From sequence record NC_019521.1: a DNA stretch of 64,000 nt, one strand, 5' to 3'. Position 1 is the first letter of the stretch; each line of letters begins with the position of its first letter. Both the position numbers and the translations under genes were made by a program. The notes under the pieces are model-generated. The model made no database searches and was not told the DNA's origin. It was given only the letters and a program-made list of their open reading frames with translations. Shown piece after piece: positions 3-33,197 of the stretch.

Positions 3-488
3 TCTGAAGCTTGGGGAATCTGTGGAGGTATATTTTTCATGGGTCGTGAAGCTTTCATAAAAGTTGGAGGATTCAATGAAGAATATCGAGTTTATGGAAT
101 GGACGATGTTGACTTTACTAATAGATTTCTGTTAAACGATTATATCGTTAAGAAGTTTCCTGAAGTATTGTTTCATCACTTATTTCACCCTAGAACTTTA
201 GAAAATTCAGATGAAGCTGAATTGGAAAGATATAAACAGGAACTTACTTACTGGTATATCAATAAGAAAAACTTTGAAGAACAAATAGAAATTCCAAAAT
301 CTGATAGACTTGTAAGAAATCATATTTCTGAAAGATTCTTAGAATTAGCTAAACGTGATGAAAACTTCTTAGAACATGAAGTTAAATTTACTACAGATTT
401 AACAAAATTCGATCTAACTAGATTCCCAGAAAAATTCCAAAGACAAATAGGAATTCTTAAAGATGATCCAAATAAATTTTACGGATAA
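3..488 (+). CDS. GT2/GT7C-like glycosyltransferase, 5' truncated by window edge
   Basis: Frame is open from nt 3 (SEAWGICGGIFFMGREAF..). It carries GGFNEEYRVYGMDDVDF and LFHHLFH motifs and is a paralog of the next gene. Confidence 0.8.
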   Translation, partial: SEAWGICGGIFFMGREAFIKVGGFNEEYRVYGMDDVDFTNRFLLNDYIVKKFPEVLFHHLFHPRTLENSDEAELERYKQELTYWYINKKNFEEQIEIPKSDRLVRNHISERFLELAKRDENFLEHEVKFTTDLTKFDLTRFPEKFQRQIGILKDDPNKFYG

Positions 489-504
489 GACCAAAACGAA
501 ACAT

Positions 505-1500
505 ATGAAACATATTGCATTTACGATTCCATTTTGGAATGTAGGAAACGAAAAAGAAAGATTAGAAAACATAGGATACGTTAAACGTTCTTGTGACAAT
601 TTCGCAGACTATTTCAACAAAAACAATAAGAACGATTTCAAGATAGATGTAATCCTAGCTAATCTTGGTGAAGAAATCAATCCGTTATATCCTGAAGCTA
701 GATTCTATCAACATACTGGTTTAAAATATCGTTTCGAAAAACCAACCAGAATGAATACTTTGTTTCTAGATTTACTAGAAGAAGGATATGATTTCGTTGG
801 TATGTGTGATCCTGATATCATACTATTCGAAGAATACTTTGAGAAGCTAACTAAGAATATCGAAGATAATCTTGATTATTTCTCAATGCTTACATATTCT
901 GTAGCAAGAACAAAACCGGAATTACGAAAGGATTTAATTCTAGAAACTAGAGAATTTCAACATCTTTCAAATCATGAACTAATTATCGAATCTAATGCAC
1001 AAGCTGAAAACTGGCGAGTTTGTGGTGGTGCTTATTTCATGTCATTAGAATTCTTCCGTGATTTAGGAGGATGGAACGAAGATTACAGAGTTTATGGAAT
1101 GGACGATGACGATTATACTTTCAGATTCGAATTAACTGGTGGTAGCGTTGTAACAGATACATCGATTATTTGGCATCATCTTTGGCATCCAACAGTATTG
1201 GGTACAGCACCTGATTACGAATTAGAAAGATACGAATATGAATGCATGTATCGTAGACTTTCTAAGGATGTTTATGAAGAACAAATCAAATCGCATCTGT
1301 GTGATAGAACTAATCGATTGGAGCATCTTTCTGATAGATTCAATAAAGCATATAGTTATCCAGATTCATTCATTAAAGCTGCTAAGACTAACAATGTATT
1401 CAGTTACGAAATCGGTAAAAGGTCTATCGAAACTATGCCAATCGAAATCAAACGTAAATTGGGATTAGTTAATGATGATAAATTTTATGGTTCTTGTTAA
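505..1500 (+). CDS. GT2/GT7C-like glycosyltransferase (GT-A fold)
   Basis: DxD motif (CDPDII), CGGAYFM, GGWNEDYRVYGMDDDDY and WHHLWH. ATG 505 preferred over the track start at 463. Confidence 0.8.
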   Translation: MKHIAFTIPFWNVGNEKERLENIGYVKRSCDNFADYFNKNNKNDFKIDVILANLGEEINPLYPEARFYQHTGLKYRFEKPTRMNTLFLDLLEEGYDFVGMCDPDIILFEEYFEKLTKNIEDNLDYFSMLTYSVARTKPELRKDLILETREFQHLSNHELIIESNAQAENWRVCGGAYFMSLEFFRDLGGWNEDYRVYGMDDDDYTFRFELTGGSVVTDTSIIWHHLWHPTVLGTAPDYELERYEYECMYRRLSKDVYEEQIKSHLCDRTNRLEHLSDRFNKAYSYPDSFIKAAKTNNVFSYEIGKRSIETMPIEIKRKLGLVNDDKFYGSC

Positions 1501-1574: not shown

Positions 1575-2180
1575 ATGAAATTAGTTATCGTAGAAGGAAT
1601 AGATAGAATCGGTAAAACTACATTCATATCAAATCTGAAAACAAAACTTGAAGAAACTAATTCTGATGTAATCATTGATAATAGAGTTCCGGTATGGTGC
1701 CCAAGGATAGCTTTGAATCATCCACCATATTGTTATGAATATTACAATGCTTTCGCATGGTCTCAGTTTCTTGAAATGTTGAAACTTTTCAATCATAAGG
1801 ATTCGATTATTATCATGGACAGACATCATGGTAGTTCAGAAGCTTATGGAATCATAAAACGTAAATCCATAATAGAAGAACTTTACGAATCAGTTGACAT
1901 TTTCAAAGAACGTATTCAAGAATTTGAAATCGAAATGATGAAACTTCTTGGAGAATCGAATGTTCATTATGTACAGTTTATTGCTGACAAGATTGGTATC
2001 AAGGACGATATAACGAAACTTGAAGATTTGAAATCAGTTAACAAGTATTACGAAGAAACTTTCGATAATCGTAAAATCAAAAACAAGTATCTGATAAAAC
2101 TTGAATCAGATGAAAACTTTGAAACGAACATCATGACTCATTTGGATTGGTTAAGTAAATTAATCAATGAAACTAAGTAA
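1575..2180 (+). CDS. Deoxynucleoside monophosphate (thymidylate-kinase-like) kinase
   Basis: P-loop VIVEGIDRIGKTT and IMDR motif. Confidence 0.8.
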   Translation: MKLVIVEGIDRIGKTTFISNLKTKLEETNSDVIIDNRVPVWCPRIALNHPPYCYEYYNAFAWSQFLEMLKLFNHKDSIIIMDRHHGSSEAYGIIKRKSIIEELYESVDIFKERIQEFEIEMMKLLGESNVHYVQFIADKIGIKDDITKLEDLKSVNKYYEETFDNRKIKNKYLIKLESDENFETNIMTHLDWLSKLINETK

Positions 2181-7540: not shown

Positions 7541-7566
7541 TTACATTTTGACATATTAAATAAAGG

Positions 7567-7596
7567 AAACGATACTGATAATTATCAGTATCGTTT
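7567..7596 (+). terminator. Perfect 30-bp palindrome / terminator
   Basis: aaacgatactgataattatcagtatcgttt followed by a T-run. Confidence 0.75.
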
Positions 7597-7605
7597 TTTA
7601 GTTTC

Positions 7606-7656: not shown

Positions 7657-8832
7657 ATGCGTAAACTATACATACTGAAATTCGATGAATCTTTGGATGA
7701 CGTCTCATGGTATTCTAAAGATTCAGATCATTTAACAGTTTCTGAAGTTAAGAACTTTGTAGAATTTGCTAAAGACGGATTCGAAATAAATCTAATTTCG
7801 TATATATCAGAAACTAGGAAACGTGACAATCTTACATTTCTAAACGTTTTCGATTTCATAGATACCGATATAAAGGAATCAGATGTTGTAATTTTCTGGA
7901 CTGGTTACAATTATTCGACTAGAGTTAAATGTGGTGTTTATGGAACTTTATGGTATACATGTTTCGCTTCACTACATAACAAACCAGTAACCCCTTACGT
8001 TTTATGTACTGATACTAGATGTTTCATGATGAATCCAGAATTCTTCATGGATAACAAAGTTTATAGTTCAGTTATCGGTAATACAATTGACAGTTTAGCT
8101 AAATCTGTTGATAAAGTAAAATTCAAATATCTAACACAGGCTAGAAATACTGAAGAATTTAAGAATCTTGTAAGAGCTAATCGAGACGCTAATCAAAATT
8201 TCTTAGAAACTATACATATTCCAACTCACTTACTTCCATTAGTTTCTCACAGAATGGAAAATATTACATATGAACATGACAATCAATATGTTTATTATGG
8301 TAGCGCTCCAATAGATTTTAGTAAGAAACGTGATTATCGTACTGAGAATATCTTTAATCTTTTCTATGCTAATAACTTTACAAATAAAGCTAAGGGTCGT
8401 TTAATCATAAATACTAAAGCTTGTGAAGTTCCAACTCAAATTACTAGTAATATCAAAGTATCTGATAGAATACCTTATTCAGAAATAAAGAATATGCTTA
8501 ATAAATCATTCGCTTCTGTTATTCTATCTGAAGAAGCTTATCAAAAGTGTGAGTTAATACCTAATCGTTTAATCGAAGGGTTAGCTGCTAAAACGTTATT
8601 ACTAATACATGAACAAGTATTGGGAGGTCTTATGAAAACTATTCATGATATTGGTTTTTCGTTATTACAGGTTATTGATATATCCAATGAAAGAGATTAC
8701 GAAACATCTAAACAGATCGATGAGCTAGCTTCAAATCATGAATTACGTAGAAGTATTATCATCAGTAATCAAAAACTTCTGAAAACTATTTTCAATCCAT
8801 TGAATCTTACAAATACAATAAATCGACTATAA
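7657..8832 (+). CDS. T4 beta-glucosyltransferase-like DNA glycosyltransferase (GT-B), paralog 1
   Basis: YVLCTDTRC vs BGT YYLFTDIRL. DRIPYSEIKNMLNKSFASVILSEEAY..IPNRLIEGLAAKTLLLI vs BGT GKIPMNMVSEKNSQAIAALIIGDKNY..TLRVWETMASDAVMLID (BGT sequence recalled). Confidence 0.7.
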   Translation: MRKLYILKFDESLDDVSWYSKDSDHLTVSEVKNFVEFAKDGFEINLISYISETRKRDNLTFLNVFDFIDTDIKESDVVIFWTGYNYSTRVKCGVYGTLWYTCFASLHNKPVTPYVLCTDTRCFMMNPEFFMDNKVYSSVIGNTIDSLAKSVDKVKFKYLTQARNTEEFKNLVRANRDANQNFLETIHIPTHLLPLVSHRMENITYEHDNQYVYYGSAPIDFSKKRDYRTENIFNLFYANNFTNKAKGRLIINTKACEVPTQITSNIKVSDRIPYSEIKNMLNKSFASVILSEEAYQKCELIPNRLIEGLAAKTLLLIHEQVLGGLMKTIHDIGFSLLQVIDISNERDYETSKQIDELASNHELRRSIIISNQKLLKTIFNPLNLTNTINRL

Positions 8833-8834
8833 AA

Positions 8835-9992
8835 ATGAATACAACAAAGAGACGACTATTTTTAATCAAATTCAAAGATTCGTTATCACCTGAATGTATC
8901 GATAAAGATACTATCAGATACAAAGAAATCTACAATGTTTTAAGATTCGTACCAACTAATGAATTCGAAATCAATCTAGTAAATTACGATAATCCGAAAG
9001 TTTCTGAAGAAAATAATCAACAGTATTACAAATACATTCATTATGAAGATTTCAAGAATCTGGAATTACTTGAAACGGATTTGTTAATTTTCTGGACTGG
9101 TTATATTTACGTTCCAACAGATGTCGATGTATCTAAAACTGATGCTTCTAATATTCGAGCATTTTATGAATGTTTAGAATCTACAAGAAATAAAGATAAC
9201 AAGCGATATCTGATTTGTACAGATACTAGATGTCCATTGATTAAGCCTGGTTTTTATTCAAGTAATGAAATATTCAAAGAAGAACTTAAGGATATCAATA
9301 TCGATGACATTCATTTGACATACCTAACACAAGCTATCGATCCTGAAGCATTTATCGAAATCGTTAAATCTTCAGAAATTAATAGTGTTCATAAAAATGT
9401 ATCAGCTATTCATATGAAGCTACATTTAGCTCCGTTAGTTTCACATGACATTCCAAAGATTAAGGAAAATCATAATGGTAAGTTTTTCTATTACGCTGGT
9501 GACTTACGTGATATCAGTAAACATAGATACGATAATATCATTAAGTTCTATTCAGTAGATTCTTCAGATTTATCAGTTAAACCATTGATAGCTTCAAACG
9601 TTCATCCAGATATTTACGATAAATTACCAAATGTTGAATTTATCAATAAGATACCATATTCTGAAGTTCCTGTAAGATTAAATGAAATGTTCGCTTCTGT
9701 TTGTTTCTCTGAAGCTGATTACGAAAAATGTAGACTTTTACCAAATCGTATTGCTGAAGGTATTGCTGCAAAAACACTTTTATTGATTCATCATAATATC
9801 GATCCAGAACGTAAGTTGAATTTAGAACCTTTACAGTATTTCGAAACTGTTGAAGACTTTAAGAAATCTTTGAAGTATTATTCAGAAAAACCTCATAGAC
9901 GTATTAACGCTATCAACAATCAACGTTATCAACTTTCGATAGAAGGTGATTTAGATGCTTTTCAGTTTTCAAGGGACTTTAGTACTATTTAA
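8835..9992 (+). CDS. T4 beta-glucosyltransferase-like DNA glycosyltransferase (GT-B), paralog 2
   Basis: YLICTDTRCP and NKIPYSEVPVRLNEMFASVCFSEADY..PNRIAEGIAAKTLLLIHHNID; clearly paralogous to 7657-8832. Confidence 0.7.
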   Translation: MNTTKRRLFLIKFKDSLSPECIDKDTIRYKEIYNVLRFVPTNEFEINLVNYDNPKVSEENNQQYYKYIHYEDFKNLELLETDLLIFWTGYIYVPTDVDVSKTDASNIRAFYECLESTRNKDNKRYLICTDTRCPLIKPGFYSSNEIFKEELKDINIDDIHLTYLTQAIDPEAFIEIVKSSEINSVHKNVSAIHMKLHLAPLVSHDIPKIKENHNGKFFYYAGDLRDISKHRYDNIIKFYSVDSSDLSVKPLIASNVHPDIYDKLPNVEFINKIPYSEVPVRLNEMFASVCFSEADYEKCRLLPNRIAEGIAAKTLLLIHHNIDPERKLNLEPLQYFETVEDFKKSLKYYSEKPHRRINAINNQRYQLSIEGDLDAFQFSRDFSTI

Positions 9993-9995
9993 TAT

Positions 9996-11228
9996 ATGAA
10001 TAAACCATTAATACTTAGAGAACTAATATTCCAACAATATTCTAGTTACGATAAGAACATCCAGATGTACAACATACATCTGGATGGTAACTTAAATGCT
10101 ACATTACATGCAATTTGTAACGATTTCAAAGTTATGACAAATGTAGCATTACATTTGAAACGTAATTTCCATCTAGAATATACAATCACTATTCCAAAGA
10201 ATACAAAACCTAATTCGTTAACATTGATTACTAATTTCGTAGAAGGTTTAGAAAAACTGATATCTAACGAAAACGTTTCATTATCCATCGTATTCAAAAA
10301 TATCAAATATAGAAACTCTGCTAAAGAAAATCGAGATAACGGTGAATGGATATTAGCAGATGGTATTAACGAAATCGATATTAACGAATTCGATTCTATA
10401 TCAACTAATTTCGAAAAATCTTTAGACTTAGTTAGTTCTTTCGAAGCTTTATACAATTGGAAATCTGAAGTATCTGAAGCTTTTAGAATCCTAGACATTA
10501 AGAAACGTAGATTCAGTTCTAGATTAAACGTTTCGTTACATTCTAAGGAAGATGAACGTGAATATCTTAAAGGTCTTGAGAAGAACTGTTCAACACTTTT
10601 CGCATTTTCAGATTCTGTGACATTACATAATCAAGCTCAATTAGATTACATAAAGAATTATTATGTTTCAGATACATATGATAAATTTAGACTTTTGAAT
10701 GGTAAAATAAACAAAGGTTTTAATGCTGAATTTATAGAATATCAAATGTCATTTTACAAATCTGTAAATACGATAAAGAAAAATCAATTGATTCAGTTCT
10801 TCGAAAACTATGATATAGAATACATATTTCCTTTTAGACTAACTGACCCGGATTGGGGATTTCAAAATCTTACTGATGAAGAGAAATCAAAAACTGTAGT
10901 AACTGATCCAACGAATTCGATACTATTAGTAACTGATGAAATACAAAAAGCTTTCATCGAATGTGTCAGAGGTTTGGATAAACGTACATTATTATTTACG
11001 TTATTCGATCTTATCAGAACTAAGAAAATAGATGTAAAGATTCCACTGTTTTCTAATCCTTTGAATATTTTACATCAGACAAGTATCGAAATACTTTATT
11101 TGATATACGATAATATCGATTTCAGATTCGATAAACATGATACTTTCGAAACTGACATTTACGATATGTTCTATGTAACTGGGAATACAACAAATTGGTT
11201 AAACAAAATAACAAAAACAAATGACTAA
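9996..11228 (+). CDS. Putative DNA arabinosyltransferase (Aat / RB69-type)
   Basis: Ordered motifs DGNLN, TIPKN, LHNQAQLDYI, IFPFRLTD, VTDPTNS and LHQTSIE match my recollection of the RB69-type Aat motifs DGNFQ, IPKN, LNPRQREYI, FWPFRISD, ITDPNDS and LHPGTIE. Needs a profile search. Confidence 0.55.
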   Translation: MNKPLILRELIFQQYSSYDKNIQMYNIHLDGNLNATLHAICNDFKVMTNVALHLKRNFHLEYTITIPKNTKPNSLTLITNFVEGLEKLISNENVSLSIVFKNIKYRNSAKENRDNGEWILADGINEIDINEFDSISTNFEKSLDLVSSFEALYNWKSEVSEAFRILDIKKRRFSSRLNVSLHSKEDEREYLKGLEKNCSTLFAFSDSVTLHNQAQLDYIKNYYVSDTYDKFRLLNGKINKGFNAEFIEYQMSFYKSVNTIKKNQLIQFFENYDIEYIFPFRLTDPDWGFQNLTDEEKSKTVVTDPTNSILLVTDEIQKAFIECVRGLDKRTLLFTLFDLIRTKKIDVKIPLFSNPLNILHQTSIEILYLIYDNIDFRFDKHDTFETDIYDMFYVTGNTTNWLNKITKTND

Positions 11229-11928
11229 AATACAAGATAAACAAGAATTCGATAGTTTAGATGAAGCTTATCTAACTTTACTAAAAAGTTTGATCGATTT
11301 AGAACCTAACGAATTAGGTGAACGTGAAATGTTTGGTATCGCTTTCGATATCAAAAATATTGATGAAACTGATCCTAAAACTAATTTCAGTAAAATCAAA
11401 GAACGTAATATCAATTTAGTATTTCAAAATGCTTTCGCTCGTTGGTTAATGTCAGGTTCTAATTCAGCTGATGAGCTTTTACCACTGAATAAACGAACTT
11501 CTCAGTTTAATGAAATCGAAGGTAGAAATCTTCTATATCCACCACGTATTCAGAATCAAATTTATGACATAGTTGATGAATTAACCGAAAATCCTATGTC
11601 AAGACGTGCTACATTATTGATACTTGACGAAAGGGATCAGATAGTTAGAAAAGAAAAACGTGAGAAATCTGATTGTAAGAAAGAATATCCTTGTACAATA
11701 GCATTACATTTCTTTATTCGTAATAACAGATTACATTCAAATGTTATGATGCGTTCTAATAATGCTGTTAAAACTATATGTTTCGATTTTTCTAATTTCG
11801 CTTTCGTACAAAATTGTATAGCTAGAGAATTAGATTTGAAAGCTGGAACTATGCATTATTACATATCAAATGCTCACATTTTACCTGAAGATTATGAACA
11901 TGCTTTAAAAATCTGTGAAGCTAACTAA
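11221..11928 (+). CDS. Thymidylate-synthase-family dCMP-modifying enzyme (dCMP hydroxylase/hydroxymethylase-like)
   Basis: SRRA, catalytic YPC158, MRSNN(178-181), Asp189 at the TS Asn177 specificity position, SNAHI. Short TS fold. Confidence 0.8.
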   Translation: MTKIQDKQEFDSLDEAYLTLLKSLIDLEPNELGEREMFGIAFDIKNIDETDPKTNFSKIKERNINLVFQNAFARWLMSGSNSADELLPLNKRTSQFNEIEGRNLLYPPRIQNQIYDIVDELTENPMSRRATLLILDERDQIVRKEKREKSDCKKEYPCTIALHFFIRNNRLHSNVMMRSNNAVKTICFDFSNFAFVQNCIARELDLKAGTMHYYISNAHILPEDYEHALKICEAN

Positions 11929-11956
11929 GAAACATTCGAATTGAGTTTGGTAATAT
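11928..11956 (+). promoter_or_regulatory. Phage promoter AGAAAC-N17-TAATAT
   Basis: Consensus-like; implies the next gene starts at ATG 11977, not TTG 11941. Confidence 0.55.
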
Positions 11957-11976
11957 TATACCAAACTCAATTTAAC

Positions 11977-13134
11977 ATGGCTAGAATAATAAAACTAGCA
12001 ATAATTGGTAACAGTGAGTATAACGATTTCGATCAGTTTACGAATCAGGTTACTGATGTATTGCAAAAATTAAAGAACACTACAGAAGACGTTTTGATCG
12101 AATATCATTACGTATCGATTGGTAGTAAATTAGGTGAATTGTCGAAGAGATTTCTAAATGCTAACCCAAAGCAACTCTATTCATCTCATACTATTCAATA
12201 CAAGAATCTTAATGCTAAACCTTGTACTGTAAGAATAGATAAGAACGGTGATTCTTATAACAGTTTAGCTCCTTTAGCTACACTTATAAATCTAATGAAT
12301 GTAGCAGATTATGTAATAGCTTTCTGGAATGGTACTGAAAAAGATTCTTTCATAAAAAGGGCTTTGACTAAATTCAAATCGAAATATTCTAAGAATTCTG
12401 AATATCGACAAAGATTACGAATAGTAAAATTCGAATCAGCTTGGATGCAAGCAAAAGGTGATTATGTTAAAGACATAGATCAGAATAAGGATTCATTGTT
12501 TTCAAAAGATTCTAAAGAATCGTATGTAACGATTAAAACTAAATTGAATACTATCAATCAGTCAGGATTAACACATGACGAGATAAACAAAAAGTTCAAT
12601 GATGTTGTAAAGAATCTAACAATAACTACTGAATCGCATTTACATGGTCCTAACTTTAAAATGTTACATGGTAATGGATCGTTAGAAGGTAAGCATACTA
12701 TCAGAATAAGTGGAACTCTCAGAAAGACTATGAATATCGAAAATCTTAACGATAATAACATAGCAACTGTAGCCTTTTATCTACCTGTAAATGAATTTGC
12801 AGATTTACTAAAGTTCATAATTTGGTGTCATGAAAACATAAAGATTATGGATGTTTCAGAAACTACAGAACTTCATAATAACGATGCTATAAATCCTCAA
12901 TGGTCTTACATGAATCATAAGGGTGAAAGTGTACATTTCTGTTACTATGAACAGAAACTTCCTGAAGTATCTTTCCAAATGATTAAGATGTATTCGATAG
13001 TTAACAATGTATCATACGAACAATTCGTAAATCTTTCACAATGGGGATTGTTTAACGCTAAAGGTTCTATCGTTTTCAAAGCTAGGAAATACTTGGAATG
13101 TTTACATGATTTGAAACTTATCCAAAAAGATTAG
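11977..13134 (+). CDS. SLOG (DUF2493/YspA-like) domain protein with unknown C-terminal domain
   Basis: KLAIIGNSEYNDF and ADYVIAFWNG resemble DUF2493 KLAIIGSRTFNDY and ADAVIAFWDG. Confidence 0.55.
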   Translation: MARIIKLAIIGNSEYNDFDQFTNQVTDVLQKLKNTTEDVLIEYHYVSIGSKLGELSKRFLNANPKQLYSSHTIQYKNLNAKPCTVRIDKNGDSYNSLAPLATLINLMNVADYVIAFWNGTEKDSFIKRALTKFKSKYSKNSEYRQRLRIVKFESAWMQAKGDYVKDIDQNKDSLFSKDSKESYVTIKTKLNTINQSGLTHDEINKKFNDVVKNLTITTESHLHGPNFKMLHGNGSLEGKHTIRISGTLRKTMNIENLNDNNIATVAFYLPVNEFADLLKFIIWCHENIKIMDVSETTELHNNDAINPQWSYMNHKGESVHFCYYEQKLPEVSFQMIKMYSIVNNVSYEQFVNLSQWGLFNAKGSIVFKARKYLECLHDLKLIQKD

Positions 13135-13165
13135 TACTTTATATTTAATCAAATACTTATACAAC

Positions 13166-13708
13166 ATGAAACATTTAATGACTATTTTCATGATGTTAAT
13201 AGTTTCATTAACGTCATGTAACAAAGAGGAAATCATAGAACCTGAACCACCAAAGAAAATCAAATACGAATTGTTTCTTTGGTCTCCCGCTAGAATGGAA
13301 ACTTATTTTCTGATACGAGATGATTCAGATAAGCAATATCAAAGTTTCTTAGATTACGCTGATTGGAATATGTTTGCAGGTCCTGAAGATCGTAATAAAT
13401 CTGAAATTACATTTTCAGGTGAAATGTTAGAATCTGAAACTTTAAGATTCCATTTACGTGGATTAGATTACGATTTAATGCCAATGGAATATAATTTCAA
13501 GGATTTCGTTTTAACTATAGACGATGAAATTGTTTATGTCGATAAAGGTATCAGAATACATGAAATTCAAATCATATATGAAGCTAAAACTGGTAAGGTT
13601 ACTGTAAACAAAAATACTAATTACGATAACGAATTACCACGTATTCCAGCTGACAGACTTGATAGCTATTATCGACCTAACTATACTATCAAAAGACCTA
13701 GAAATTAA
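13166..13708 (+). CDS. Lipoprotein (Bacteroidota-type signal)
   Basis: MKHLMTIFMMLIVSLTS-C lipobox followed by acidic NKEE. Confidence 0.7.
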   Translation: MKHLMTIFMMLIVSLTSCNKEEIIEPEPPKKIKYELFLWSPARMETYFLIRDDSDKQYQSFLDYADWNMFAGPEDRNKSEITFSGEMLESETLRFHLRGLDYDLMPMEYNFKDFVLTIDDEIVYVDKGIRIHEIQIIYEAKTGKVTVNKNTNYDNELPRIPADRLDSYYRPNYTIKRPRN

Positions 13709-13738
13709 AACTTACCGTTTCGCAATACCCTTCTCAAT

Positions 13739-13766
13739 GAAAACCTGATAGAAATATCAGGTTTTC
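13739..13766 (+). terminator. Terminator, 12-bp stem with GAAA loop
   Basis: gaaaacctgata-gaaa-tatcaggttttc. Confidence 0.75.
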
Positions 13767-13771
13767 TAGTT

Positions 13772-13800
13772 TGAAACTTTGTTCAAATCATTAGTACTAT
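13772..13800 (+). promoter_or_regulatory. Phage promoter TGAAAC-N17-TACTAT
   Basis: Consensus match upstream of rmlB. Confidence 0.7.
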
Positions 13801-13822
13801 TCATTTAAATCAAATAATAATT

Positions 13823-14845
13823 ATGTCAAATATTAAACGTTCAGTTCTTGTAACTGGTGCTCTTGGATTCATTGGTTCTAATTTCGTTAGAACTATGGCA
13901 AAAAGATATCCAGATTACTTATTCATTCCACTTGATAATTTCGGATATGCTGCAAACCTGGAACATATCCCAGTCTTTGAAAAACTTACAAACGTTACAA
14001 AAGTTCAAGAAATAACTTTAGGTAGTTTCGATGAAGCTGAAAACTTTATTCTAGCTTCAATTTTCAAAACTTATGACATTGATACTGTGGTACATTTTGC
14101 TGCTGAATCACATGTCGATAATTCGATTTCTAATCCTGACATATTCGTTTTAGCTAATGTCAAAGGTACTGTCGATTTATTGAATGTTGCTAAGAATTAT
14201 TGGGCTGATCGTAAAGATGTAATATTCCATCATGTTTCAACCGATGAAGTATTTGGGGCTCTTGGAATGGAAGGTTCATTTAACGATGATTCTAATTACG
14301 ACCCACATTCACCTTATTCAGCTTCAAAAGCTGCAAGTGATATGTTCGTTAAAGCTTATGCTACGACTTACAATATGTTAGTATCGATTTCTAATTGTTC
14401 AAATAACTTCGGACCATATCAACACAAGGAAAAACTGATTCCAAAAGTTTTAGACGCAATTAAGAACAAAACTGAAATACCTCTTTACGGACATGGTCAA
14501 AATGTTAGAGATTGGTTACATGTTTTAGATCATAACGACGCTATAGATATGATTATCCATCATACTTTGAAATCTAAAGAATCTCGTAGAACTTGGTTAA
14601 TCGGTGGAGGTGTTGAATTAACAAATATAGAATTAATCGATAGACTAACAGAATCTGCTAATGAACATGATAATACATTTGATTATAAGTCATTGATTAA
14701 ATTCGTATCAGATCGTGCTGGTCATGATTTACGATATTCAATAGATTCTAGCACCTTACGTAAAGAACTTGAATGGAAGCCAAAATACGACATTACTAAA
14801 TGTATACCTTACATGATCGGAGAAACTTTAGGATTTACGAAATAA
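13823..14845 (+). CDS. rmlB: dTDP-glucose 4,6-dehydratase
   Basis: GALGFIG Rossmann motif, HFAAESHVDNSI, HVSTDEVFG, YSASK, DRAGHDLRY. Confidence 0.92.
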   Translation: MSNIKRSVLVTGALGFIGSNFVRTMAKRYPDYLFIPLDNFGYAANLEHIPVFEKLTNVTKVQEITLGSFDEAENFILASIFKTYDIDTVVHFAAESHVDNSISNPDIFVLANVKGTVDLLNVAKNYWADRKDVIFHHVSTDEVFGALGMEGSFNDDSNYDPHSPYSASKAASDMFVKAYATTYNMLVSISNCSNNFGPYQHKEKLIPKVLDAIKNKTEIPLYGHGQNVRDWLHVLDHNDAIDMIIHHTLKSKESRRTWLIGGGVELTNIELIDRLTESANEHDNTFDYKSLIKFVSDRAGHDLRYSIDSSTLRKELEWKPKYDITKCIPYMIGETLGFTK

Positions 14846-15417
14846 TGAAAAACATACCAGCAGGAATTGAAGGATGTATTTTTATACAGAATTCACAATT
14901 TAAAGATGAACGTGGATCGTTCAGAGAAACTTTCAGTAAAGAACGATTATCGTTCATATGTAAACATGAATTTGTTCAGGACAATGTTTCGATATCACAT
15001 AAGAATGTATTACGTGGAATGCATATTCAAACAGGTGATTCTGTACAAGGTAAACTTGTTACATGTCTTAAAGGTAGATTAATCGATTTAGTTGTAGACA
15101 TTCGTAAAGATTCTCTTACTTACGGTAAGACTATTACAGTATTACTACATGAACCAAATATGTCGTTATTTGTACCACGTGGTTGTCTACATGGATTCAT
15201 ATCATTAGAAGACGATACAATCATGCATTACAAATGTGATAACTATTATTCGAAAGAACATGAAGTATCTTATGACCCTTTAAGTTTACCGGAAAATATA
15301 TTCATACAAATCGAACAGGGTTTTAATATCGGTATAGACGATTTGATTATCAATTCTAAAGACAGAACTGGTAAAATGATCTATACTAACGAAGGAATTT
15401 TAAGTTCATTCATTTAA
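14845..15417 (+). CDS. rmlC: dTDP-4-dehydrorhamnose 3,5-epimerase
   Basis: DERGSFRE, VQDNVS, VLRGMHIQ, QGKLV, HGF. TAATG coupling to rmlB gives start 14845. Confidence 0.9.
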   Translation: MKNIPAGIEGCIFIQNSQFKDERGSFRETFSKERLSFICKHEFVQDNVSISHKNVLRGMHIQTGDSVQGKLVTCLKGRLIDLVVDIRKDSLTYGKTITVLLHEPNMSLFVPRGCLHGFISLEDDTIMHYKCDNYYSKEHEVSYDPLSLPENIFIQIEQGFNIGIDDLIINSKDRTGKMIYTNEGILSSFI

Positions 15418-15420
15418 CAT

Positions 15421-16302
15421 ATGCTTACAAGAAATAGAAAAGGAATTATTTTAGCAGGTGGGTCTGGGACCCGCTTGCATCCATTGACTATCAGTGTTTC
15501 GAAACAGTTATTACCTGTATACGATAAACCAATGATTTACTATCCATTGACAACTCTTATCGAAGCTGGTATAAACGAAATACTTATAATATCAACACCA
15601 CAGGATAGAAATTCTTTCGAGAACTTACTAGGTAACGGTTCACAATTTGGTGTTAGAATAGAATACGCTGTTCAAGAAAAACCTAATGGTTTAGCACAAG
15701 CTTTCGTTATCGGTGAAGAATTCATAGGTAAATCTAAAGTAGCTCTGATTTTAGGTGACAACATTTTCCATGCTTCTAATATAGATAGATTACTTATGGA
15801 AGCTAATATGTCTGATAAAAATACGATATTTGCATATCGTGTAAATGATCCTCAGAGATATGGTGTAGTTGAATTCGATGAATATGATAACGCTGTTTCG
15901 ATCGAAGAAAAACCTTTGAATCCTAAATCTAATTACGCAGTACCAGGCTTATATTTCTATAATAACGATGTTATCGAAGTAGCTAAGACTATCAAACCTT
16001 CAGCTCGTGGAGAATACGAAATATCAGATATTAACGCATATTACTTAGATAAGAATCAATTATCAGTTAAAGCTTTTGACAGAAGTGGTACTACATGGTT
16101 AGATACTGGTACTATTCAGTCTTTAGCTGAAGCTTCTTTATTTGTTGAAGTCATGCAAAATCGTACCGGTAATTTAATAGGTAGCCCCGAAGAAGCTGCA
16201 TTTAGACATGATGAAATATCTAAAGACTCATTAATTGAATCTGCTAAGAAATATGATAAGTCTGGTTATGGTGAGTATCTTTTGAAACTTGTACAGAAAT
16301 GA
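15421..16302 (+). CDS. rmlA: Glucose-1-phosphate thymidylyltransferase
   Basis: GIILAGGSGTRLHP, SKQLLPVYDKPM, LGDNIF, EEKP, WLDTGT. Confidence 0.95.
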   Translation: MLTRNRKGIILAGGSGTRLHPLTISVSKQLLPVYDKPMIYYPLTTLIEAGINEILIISTPQDRNSFENLLGNGSQFGVRIEYAVQEKPNGLAQAFVIGEEFIGKSKVALILGDNIFHASNIDRLLMEANMSDKNTIFAYRVNDPQRYGVVEFDEYDNAVSIEEKPLNPKSNYAVPGLYFYNNDVIEVAKTIKPSARGEYEISDINAYYLDKNQLSVKAFDRSGTTWLDTGTIQSLAEASLFVEVMQNRTGNLIGSPEEAAFRHDEISKDSLIESAKKYDKSGYGEYLLKLVQK

Positions 16303-30024: not shown

Positions 30025-30744
30025 ATGAACAAACAAACTAATCTCCTGTTTGACGACAGACAAGACTTAGCTAAATCATTGGAACATAGACTGACCAATG
30101 TGAACAACCAACTTAACCAATTTGTAGCTGAATTCCGTAAACTTGTACAAGACCCGCAAAGTAATGTATTACACATGTTCGATATGATTATCAACAAAAA
30201 TGATAGAATCGATATCGATCATACAATCTATTTATGTGGTATCGGTAAGAACATTCCATCACTTCGTAAAGCTTCAGCAACTTTTAAATCGTTAGGTCTT
30301 AAATGTGAAGTACTTGACGCAGTTGATGCTTTACATGGTGATTTAGGTTGTATCAGGGATTATGATACTGTAATATTCTTTTCGAAATCTGGTAATACTT
30401 CAGAATTGTTAAGAACTATGCAATATTTAGATTCCATAAACACTGTAATTGATGGTGAAAGTTCTGTATCGAATAAATCTATTTGTATAGATATGTTTGC
30501 AGTTTCAATGAATAGCGAATTCGATTCAGGTTTTGAAAACTTCAAAACCATCAATCATGTAGTATTACCGAAAACCGGTGAAGCTGACGAATTCAATAAA
30601 GTCCCAACCACTTCACCGATAGCCTTCCAAATCTTCTTAGACATGTTAGCTTGTGAATATGCTTCTGTTTATGATTTGACTTTAGAAGATTTCGGTGGTA
30701 ATCACCCGGGTGGTGACATTGGAAAATTCATAAACAAAAACTAA
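30025..30744 (+). CDS. KdsD/GutQ-like SIS-domain arabinose-5-phosphate isomerase (no CBS domains)
   Basis: CGIGKN..RKASATFKSLG, ALHGDLG, FSKSGNTSEL, VPTTS, NHPGG at the C-terminus. Confidence 0.8.
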   Translation: MNKQTNLLFDDRQDLAKSLEHRLTNVNNQLNQFVAEFRKLVQDPQSNVLHMFDMIINKNDRIDIDHTIYLCGIGKNIPSLRKASATFKSLGLKCEVLDAVDALHGDLGCIRDYDTVIFFSKSGNTSELLRTMQYLDSINTVIDGESSVSNKSICIDMFAVSMNSEFDSGFENFKTINHVVLPKTGEADEFNKVPTTSPIAFQIFLDMLACEYASVYDLTLEDFGGNHPGGDIGKFINKN

Positions 30745-31466: not shown

Positions 31467-33197
31467 ATGGAGCATGTAGTTATATTGGCTGGTGGTCTTG
31501 GTTCTAGACTTCATAAATTTACAGCTAATCTTTATCCTAAGATTTTGATTTCGATGGGTAACGAAACTATGTTAGACAAACTTGTAAATTACTATTCAGT
31601 TTACAAGGATTTGAAATCGTTTAACATTGTCGTTTCGACTGAAGAAAATCAAAGACTTATATCTAATTATCTGAATCGATATCATTCTAACGCTTTCGGA
31701 AAAAATACAAAAATCGATGTATTACTTTACAAAAAGTTAGATGGTTCTTTCAATACGATTTACAACCTATTCAAGGGTCAGGGATTGAAGAATGTAGTAT
31801 TCAATTGGTCTGATATCATTCCAACATCACATCTTCAGGTAACAAAATTATTGACTAACGAATTCAAGATAATTACTGATGTTCAAAAACGTCATAGGAT
31901 GGGTATCGAATTTAGACAAGGTACAAGAACTTATGAAGTTGTCAAATATTCGAAAGATGATATGAAGGGTAACATTCCAGGATATTTCTTTATAGGTGAT
32001 TTCGATAGTATATTCGATCATGTATTCGTTGATAACTTAAGACTATATCATAATCTGTCACCAGAAATAGATTTGATGGATGCTTTAGAAGCACAAATCG
32101 AAAAGAATAGATGTATAGTTTCAACTAATGAAATAGATTTTATCGATATCGGAGATGTTGAAAAATATGAAAAATACATGGAAACGATATCGTTAGAAAC
32201 TAGATATTTCAATAGTTTAGAAATTACTGAAAATACAGTTCGTAAGAAAGCTTTAAACGAAAAAGGTATGTCAGTAATCGATAATGAATTGAATTGGTAT
32301 TCTACAGTTGGTAGATTCTTTCCAGATACTAAAAATCGTCCAGCTATTCCAAGAATTTCTAATATTCAAAAGAATTATGATTATCCTCAAGGTGAACAGA
32401 AATTTCATTCTATTGAATTTTCAATGAATCGTATTGACGGTAAAACTGTTGACGAATATCTTTGGAACGATCCTTTAGAAATGTATAATGTATTACGTTT
32501 ATTTGATACTGAGATTTCTAAGTTTCATAATATCGAACAATCGAATAAACCTGAAAAACGTTGGAATGAACATCATATGCATGAATATTTCAAAGTTACA
32601 TATCAACGTTTAGATGAAATATTCTTCATGTTACAAGCTGATGTACATCATTTCAAAATCGGTGATAAGATTCATAGTTTCAAAGGTGATACTATTCATT
32701 TACTTGAACATACTATGAAATATCTTTATGACGCTTATTCTAAATCTGAAGCTAATGAATGGGGATTGATTCATGGTGACCCAAACACTTCTAACGTAAT
32801 GATTTCTAATGATGGTACCGAAATGTTCTTTATCGACCCAAGAGGATTATTCGGACATTCTTTGATGTTTGGTGATATTTATTACGATTGGGCTAAATTC
32901 ATATATGGACTTCAAGGTTATTCTAGATTCAATTTAGATAAGACTTTCGAATTACATTATGACGAACATAGTAAAACTATGCAAGTAGATTTCTTCAAAT
33001 ATGGAATCTATGATATCGATACAGTGTTACATACTGTAAAACAGATTAGACCTGATTTAGATATCAAGCGTTTACGTGTTATCGTTGGTTTGATTCATGT
33101 TAAATTAGCACAGTACATAAGAAACAATCCATCAAAAATGTACGCAACTTATTATTACGGTAAATACTTATTAGAAACAACCTTATCTGAAAAATAA
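31467..33197 (+). CDS. Sugar-1-phosphate nucleotidyltransferase fused to APH/choline-kinase-like sugar kinase
   Basis: N-terminal VILAGGLGSRL..PKIL, NWSD and DIGD. C-terminal LIHGDPNTSN and FFIDPRG kinase motifs. Confidence 0.8.
   Translation: MEHVVILAGGLGSRLHKFTANLYPKILISMGNETMLDKLVNYYSVYKDLKSFNIVVSTEENQRLISNYLNRYHSNAFGKNTKIDVLLYKKLDGSFNTIYNLFKGQGLKNVVFNWSDIIPTSHLQVTKLLTNEFKIITDVQKRHRMGIEFRQGTRTYEVVKYSKDDMKGNIPGYFFIGDFDSIFDHVFVDNLRLYHNLSPEIDLMDALEAQIEKNRCIVSTNEIDFIDIGDVEKYEKYMETISLETRYFNSLEITENTVRKKALNEKGMSVIDNELNWYSTVGRFFPDTKNRPAIPRISNIQKNYDYPQGEQKFHSIEFSMNRIDGKTVDEYLWNDPLEMYNVLRLFDTEISKFHNIEQSNKPEKRWNEHHMHEYFKVTYQRLDEIFFMLQADVHHFKIGDKIHSFKGDTIHLLEHTMKYLYDAYSKSEANEWGLIHGDPNTSNVMISNDGTEMFFIDPRGLFGHSLMFGDIYYDWAKFIYGLQGYSRFNLDKTFELHYDEHSKTMQVDFFKYGIYDIDTVLHTVKQIRPDLDIKRLRVIVGLIHVKLAQYIRNNPSKMYATYYYGKYLLETTLSEK

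Follow-up and report, generated by a model that had tools for sequence, protein, structure and literature searches.

The 64,000-nucleotide stretch analysed here (the window; positions count from its first base unless genome coordinates are given) corresponds to bases 124001-188000 of Sphingomonas phage PAU (NC_019521 / JQ362498, 219,372 bp). Positions 8800-15000 match this phage at 100% in megablast. PAU is a jumbo myovirus with a GC content of ~30%, stands outside the Straboviridae and has a Bacteroidota host. Extensive modification of its DNA has been reported (PMC7824862). The gene in focus, gp182, lies in a tightly packed run, gp179-gp184, that begins after a terminator-like hairpin at 7564-7599. 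Its product has the fold of thymidylate synthase (TS):

gp182, 11221-11928, forward strand: 235 aa, TS fold, predicted 5-hydroxy-deoxycytidine monophosphate (5-hydroxy-dCMP, 5hodCMP) synthase

RefSeq names gp182 'thymidylate synthase', and the protein scores above the cut-off against Pfam PF00303 Thymidylat_synt (E 2e-11) and also matches the 'thymidylate synthase' family PHROG 160 (E 1.8e-35). Judging from its sequence, we consider it very probable that gp182 is a 5-hydroxy-dCMP synthase of the TS superfamily. The protein is a new and distant member of an enzyme class first described, along with its marker residue and its pathway, in 2026, and not a case of new chemistry. New are the host lineage, a very low sequence identity with the characterised enzymes, the change of E58 (E. 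coli ThyA numbering) to a hydrophobic residue as a second marker, and the presence of extra sugar genes.

In RB69 and in Acinetobacter phage DLP3, cytosine is replaced by arabinosylated 5-hydroxycytosine (Lee et al., NAR 2026, PMC13326640). The makers of 5-hydroxy-dCMP are the TS homologs RB69 gp48 and DLP3 gp80, with O2 as the source of oxygen and a loosely bound flavin resembling flavin mononucleotide on enzymes of this type (PMC13326640). Among the residues near C5, the one that differs consistently is Asp169, which is Asn in these enzymes; this Asn has been proposed as the diagnostic residue of flavin/O2 dCMP hydroxylases, and N177D and L143E go along with it (PMC13326640). All nine of the nine diverse D169N homologs tested made 5-hydroxydeoxycytidine (5hodC), including those of Shewanella phage Thanatos and Rhizobium phage RL38J1 (PMC13326640). 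Established for the family are the attack of a Cys at C6 and C5 hydroxylation by flavin and O2, after which the product is phosphorylated, built into DNA and glycosylated there. For a flavin-bound crystal structure from phage HY126, Lee et al. refer to He et al. (Nat Chem Biol 2026) (PMC13326640). We found no paper naming PAU as a 5-hydroxycytosine phage, in a search that did not cover the supplements of Lee et al.

Active-site residues of gp182 were mapped in a nine-sequence alignment that included gp182, E. coli ThyA and T4 gp42. The positions in gp182 and their E. coli ThyA equivalents are as follows:

F72: E58 (catalytic Glu replaced)
Y106: Y94
R128/R129: R126/R127
E155: L143
C158: C146, within an EYPCT motif
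T159: H147
R178-S179-N180-N181: R166-S167-C168-D169
T185: G173
D189: N177
H219: H207

The preliminary description of this DNA had picked out C158, R178-S-N-N181 and D189, and translation and alignment with E. coli ThyA agree in placing these residues at those positions, opposite C146, R166-S167-C168-D169 and N177. It had also taken RSxD to be the norm of TS and gp42, which is what the comparison set contains (RSCD in E. coli ThyA; RSND in T4 gp42, SPO1 gp29 and PAU gp25). The proposal that Asp at the N177 position specifies a cytosine substrate fits the occurrence of the same Asp in T4 gp42, in the cytidine monophosphate (CMP) 5-hydroxymethylase MilA and in the verified 5-hydroxy-dCMP synthases (PMC13326640 and our alignment). 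Beyond these residues, gp182 has E155 for L143, F72 for E58 and T185 for G173. The protein carries the full signature of 5hodCMP synthases, with C146 kept, N177D, D169N and L143E, plus E58F and G173T. gp182 and the lineages of verified 5hodCMP synthases have in common a Phe at E58 and a residue other than Gly at G173, whereas T4 gp42 has Glu, Asp and Gly at the E58, D169 and G173 positions. The Straboviridae synthases (RB69 gp48 and DLP3 gp80, with 9iqc/9iqu/9ir2 as structures solved for a nearly identical protein of the Mosigvirus type) resemble gp182 in their length of ~235 aa, EYPCT, MRS(N/Q)N, Asp at N177 and Phe at E58, and differ from it in having RSQN and not RSNN.

The signature is not a product of chance or decay: in an alignment of 17 sequences, in which the relatives of gp182 are 31-53% identical to it, the key residues are invariant (E155, P157, C158, R178, S179, N181, D189 and H219). 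RSNN and the Asp are retained in relatives at 52%, 49% and 39% identity. This conservation also bears on whether gp182 might have lost catalysis and survive as a TS-like protein that binds nucleotides or takes part in a complex for deoxynucleoside triphosphate synthesis. Two residues essential to classical TS chemistry are indeed gone, but the Cys nucleophile, the phosphate-binding Arg and Ser residues, the equivalents of Tyr94 and His207, and the replacement residues E155, N181 and D189 are all invariant in distant relatives, and active enzymes exist with the same replacements. We regard a dead enzyme as highly improbable on these grounds.

The same residues separate gp182 from folate-dependent enzymes. 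If gp182 were a dCMP hydroxymethylase like T4 gp42, PAU DNA would carry glycosylated 5-hydroxymethylcytosine. T4 gp42 does share with gp182 the TS fold, the Cys nucleophile, Asp at N177, an acidic residue at the L143 position and a role as the first step to glycosylated cytosine DNA; the fold, the catalytic Cys, the Asp and the acidic residue are common to MilA as well. Public records call such genes 'thymidylate synthase' or 'dCMP hydroxymethylase'. However, T4 gp42, which uses methylene-tetrahydrofolate, retains E60 and D171 (E. coli E58 and D169), the Gly and RSND. Glu58 and Asp169 are retained likewise in SPO1 gp29, ThyA and the 82 hydroxymethylase-like representatives, where gp182 has Phe and Asn. 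MilA (5jnh/5b6d), though alike in its Asp at N177, has RAND with Asp169 kept, is about 330 aa long, acts on a ribonucleotide and is folate-dependent. The D169N homologs tested by Lee et al. all gave 5hodC and not 5-hydroxymethyldeoxycytidine (PMC13326640).

Phylogeny and profile comparisons point the same way. An exhaustive HMMER search returned 3173 homologs, and the census and trees rest on the best 150 representatives of these 3173. At positions 143/146/169/177, the hydroxymethylase-like combination D/C/D/D was found in 81 of the 152 proteins examined and E/C/N/D in 50. FastTree (160 sequences) placed gp182 in a clade of 66 with support 98, whose members have a hydrophobic residue at position 58, in most cases Asn at 169, and Asp at 177. 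A matching clade of 62 sequences that contains gp182 was recovered by IQ-TREE (LG+C20+F+G4, 92 sequences; SH-aLRT 100). Included in the gp182 clade are RB69 gp48, itself a verified enzyme, AB-Navy1_076 (91.9% identical to the verified DLP3 gp80) and RL2RES_096 (97.3% identical to the verified RL38J1 gp216). T4 gp42, which forms a long branch, falls outside the clade, as do SPO1 gp29, both ThyAs and all sequences with E58 and D169. The preliminary description had named such a phylogeny as a check, and gp182 groups with the hydroxylase-type homologs. Against the PDB, a profile of the gp182 subfamily found 9iqu/9iqc as the nearest solved structure (E 2e-50, full length), followed by MilA (5e-36) and, far more weakly, T4 gp42 (2e-13) and E. 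coli ThyA (about 1e-10). The loss of both Glu58 and Asp169, together with the separation of gp182 from T4 gp42 in the tree, makes a hydroxymethylase quite unlikely.

Several points weigh against assigning gp182 to the 5-hydroxy-dCMP synthases. The protein is only 24-27% identical to verified enzymes, and it reads YPPRI where these, including the Straboviridae synthases, read YGPRI. Position 169 is occupied by Cys, Ser or Asp in a few members of the gp182 clade, so that the chemistry cannot be read from the clade alone and the residue matters too. We infer that 9iqc and 9iqu are the structures of He et al. Where it is printed in the alignment, the 9iqc sequence is nearly letter-for-letter that of a 238-aa TS homolog of a Mosigvirus (RB69-like), from which RB69 gp48 differs at 2 of 238 residues; a literature search for the codes 9IQC, 9IQU and 9IR2 returned nothing relevant.

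A canonical ThyA was considered for gp182 and rejected. E. coli ThyA and PAU gp25 share with gp182 the fold and the equivalents of Cys146, Arg126/127, Arg166, Ser167, Tyr94 and His207, but Asn177, Asp169, Glu58 and Leu143 all differ, and NCBIfam ThyA models score gp182 at 17-53 bits, below their cut-offs of 108-427. PAU encodes a canonical ThyA of its own in gp25 (E 5.9e-75; RSND and Asn) as well as a dihydrofolate reductase, so gp182 is not needed to make deoxythymidine monophosphate. ThyX was looked for in PAU and not found. At 443 aa, gp25 (PAU genome 16974-18305) is longer than E. coli ThyA (264 aa) and contains a ~180-aa insertion after the W80 region, with all catalytic residues kept. 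Two genes past it lies gp27 (PAU genome 18772-19599), which matches a MazG-like pyrophosphatase PHROG (E 1.7e-5) and may be a second enzyme cleaning the nucleotide pool beside gp106, described below.

The other genes of the window considered together with gp182 are the following:

gp170 (C-terminal part, cut by the window edge) and gp171, 3-1500, forward strand: GT-A-type glycosyltransferases (Glyco_transf_7C)
gp172, 1575-2180, forward strand: nucleotide kinase of the thymidylate-kinase family, candidate 5hodCMP kinase
gp179 and gp180, 7657-9992, forward strand: tandem paralogs of PHROG 32512 (found almost only here), possibly further glycosyltransferases
gp181, 9996-11228, forward strand: predicted GT-B-fold DNA glycosyltransferase, its gene sharing its last 8 nt with the start of gp182
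gp183, 11941-13134, forward strand: 397 aa, TTG start as listed, directly downstream of gp182
gp185-gp187, 13823-16302, forward strand: RmlB, RmlC and RmlA (dTDP-glucose 4,6-dehydratase, 3,5-epimerase, glucose-1-phosphate thymidylyltransferase)
gp212, 30025-30744, forward strand: arabinose-5-phosphate isomerase (SIS domain), RB69 gp55 homolog (PHROG 5670, E 4e-79)
gp215, 31467-33197, forward strand: fusion of a nucleoside triphosphate (NTP)-transferase and a kinase, homolog of DLP3 gp82 / RB69 gp52:53 (UDP-arabinofuranose formation)

The genomic company expected of a 5hodCMP synthase is present in PAU, in the form of gp172, gp181, gp212, gp215 and gp106. The last is a dCTPase/dUTPase of the T4 gp56 type (31% identity, E 1e-21 to RB69 gp56). 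For gp215, whose homology was already noticed in PAU by Thomas et al. 2018 (PMC6024577), tblastn with the AB-Navy1 ortholog gave E 6e-40. With the phosphatase RB69 gp51 / AB-Navy1_077 as query, tblastn gave no PAU homolog; PAU gp95 resembles RB69 gp51 only weakly (E 3e-4). Like gp182, the Straboviridae synthases keep company with a nucleotide kinase, a GT-B DNA glycosyltransferase and UDP-arabinose genes. Unlike theirs, the PAU cluster is split, with synthase and glycosyltransferase at 7.6-13 kb of the window, kinase and GT-A genes at 0-2 kb and the arabinose genes at 30-33 kb, and PAU has more candidate glycosyltransferases as well as Rml genes.

The gene immediately upstream of gp182 is a candidate for attaching the base-proximal sugar on 5-hydroxycytosine. 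The AlphaFold model of gp181 has a predicted local distance difference test (pLDDT) score of 70 and a predicted template modelling (pTM) score of 0.74. In VIA-align, all 50 of the 50 matches listed for residues 4-405 were GT-B-fold proteins (glycosyltransferases and UDP-sugar 2-epimerases) with Z 8-10. Among them are 6kih, 8ixp and 3c4q, structures given by Lee et al. for their base-proximal transferases (PMC13326640). Foldseek with the same model gave no match at E <= 0.001. The gp181 family aligns with RL2RES_097, which adjoins the synthase of a Rhizobium phage of the Pootjesviridae (hhalign 96%, E 2.5e-9), and a weak C-terminal match to the DLP3 gp79 / RB69 gp46:47 type covers FPFR-x-[ST]D, TDPxN and NP..H....E..YF. 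In two metagenomic PAU-like contigs, L006 and L019, a gp181 homolog lies directly upstream of the TS homolog, with a thymidylate-kinase-family kinase at most two genes upstream of the latter. Kinase, gp181 homolog and TS homolog are adjacent in that order in L006; in L019, a 362-aa gene stands between the first two. For gp179 and gp180, the match to Glyco_trans_1_2 is weak (E 0.015, below the cut-off), and gp180 has no PDB sequence match.

The neighbourhood also bears on whether gp182 might use the same flavin/O2 chemistry on another substrate, such as CMP as in MilA, or whether its product might be derivatised by a sugar other than arabinose, such as rhamnose. The CMP-specific MilA is the second-best solved relative, the dTDP-rhamnose pathway adjoins the gp182 operon, and a related D169N homolog of another phage is coupled to a methyltransferase without glycosyltransferases. 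The context of gp182 is, however, that of DNA-precursor metabolism (dCTPase, deoxynucleoside monophosphate kinase, polymerase), and the UDP-arabinose module of PAU is complete, as in RB69 and DLP3. A different substrate or fate seems very unlikely to us. The signature, the clade of verified enzymes and the setting among glycosylation genes together favour a dCMP hydroxylase over a folate-dependent hydroxymethylase, as the preliminary description had proposed.

By analogy with the characterised enzymes, Cys158 of gp182 would add to C6 of dCMP, Asp189 would select the cytosine ring, and Arg128/129, Arg178 and Ser179 would grip the phosphate. With Phe72 and Asn181 standing where folate-dependent enzymes have Glu58 and Asp169, hydroxylation at C5 would likely proceed through a loosely bound reduced flavin and O2 and not through methylene-tetrahydrofolate, with 5-hydroxy-dCMP as the putative product. 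The gp56-like gp106 would both remove dCTP and supply dCMP. Conversion of 5hodCMP to the triphosphate might then fall to gp172 and host kinases, and the phage polymerase would place 5-hydroxycytosine in DNA instead of cytosine. Sugars would finally be transferred onto the 5-hydroxyl by gp181 and further glycosyltransferases, in what is a presumed order of steps. The sugar is most likely arabinofuranose, drawn from UDP-arabinofuranose that gp212 and gp215 would provide.

PAU might go further than RB69 in decorating its DNA. Candidate glycosyltransferases are more numerous (gp170, gp171, gp179, gp180 and gp181) than in RB69, and these, together with the Rml genes, make a more complex or mixed glycan possible. 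An undescribed glycan on 5-hydroxycytosine, for example a mixed or branched one that these five proteins would assemble from UDP-arabinofuranose and dTDP-rhamnose (or a 6-deoxyhexose), is conceivable, if doubtful. If true, the DNA of a jumbo phage with a Bacteroidota host would bear a new hypermodification. An RmlD-like protein at about 201976-202524 of the PAU genome, ~64 kb from RmlB/C/A, makes the dTDP-L-rhamnose pathway look complete. A parallel outside the Straboviridae is RL38J1 gp216 (Pootjesviridae), which shares signature and clade with gp182 and whose relative RL2RES_096 has the 343-aa gp181 homolog RL2RES_097 as its neighbour. RL2RES_096 is 26% identical to gp182 and has an insertion after the catalytic Cys. 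Unlike the arabinose route predicted for PAU, RL38J1 is reported to have galactosyl/glucosyl-5-hydroxycytosine DNA and a UDP-galactofuranose pathway (PMC13326640).

As a predicted 5-hydroxy-dCMP synthase, gp182 gives a likely chemical basis for the long-reported extensive DNA modification of PAU. The diagnostic residues hold at about 25% identity, and E58-to-hydrophobic as a second marker helps define the residues behind the switch from folate to flavin. The identity of the modification matters for work on sequencing, restriction and defence systems with such phages. The labels 'thymidylate synthase' and 'dCMP hydroxymethylase' on genes like gp182 need correction. In several hundred Straboviridae records, the D169N enzyme carries one of these two names, and the HAD phosphatase beside it is often named 'phosphoheptose isomerase'; these labels are outdated.

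Directly downstream of gp182, gp183 is retained in L006 (25% identity) and not in L019. Its N-terminal ~150 residues give weak SLOG/YAcAr/DprA-like Rossmann leads (protein-atlas score 0.77, below the trust level; model pLDDT 35). The methyltransferase-coupled homolog mentioned above, P0007, is found in an unrelated small phage contig (L021:6479-8004, ERR5037011_51406). It is a D169N/N177D TS homolog with RSSN and the Asp, and it starts at the last base of the preceding gene for a class-I S-adenosylmethionine (SAM) methyltransferase. The locus comes after a PRA-PH/MazG-like pyrophosphatase and is followed by a family-A DNA polymerase; glycosyltransferases are absent from its surroundings. This context suggests that 5-hydroxycytosine may be O-methylated to 5-methoxycytosine in some phages.

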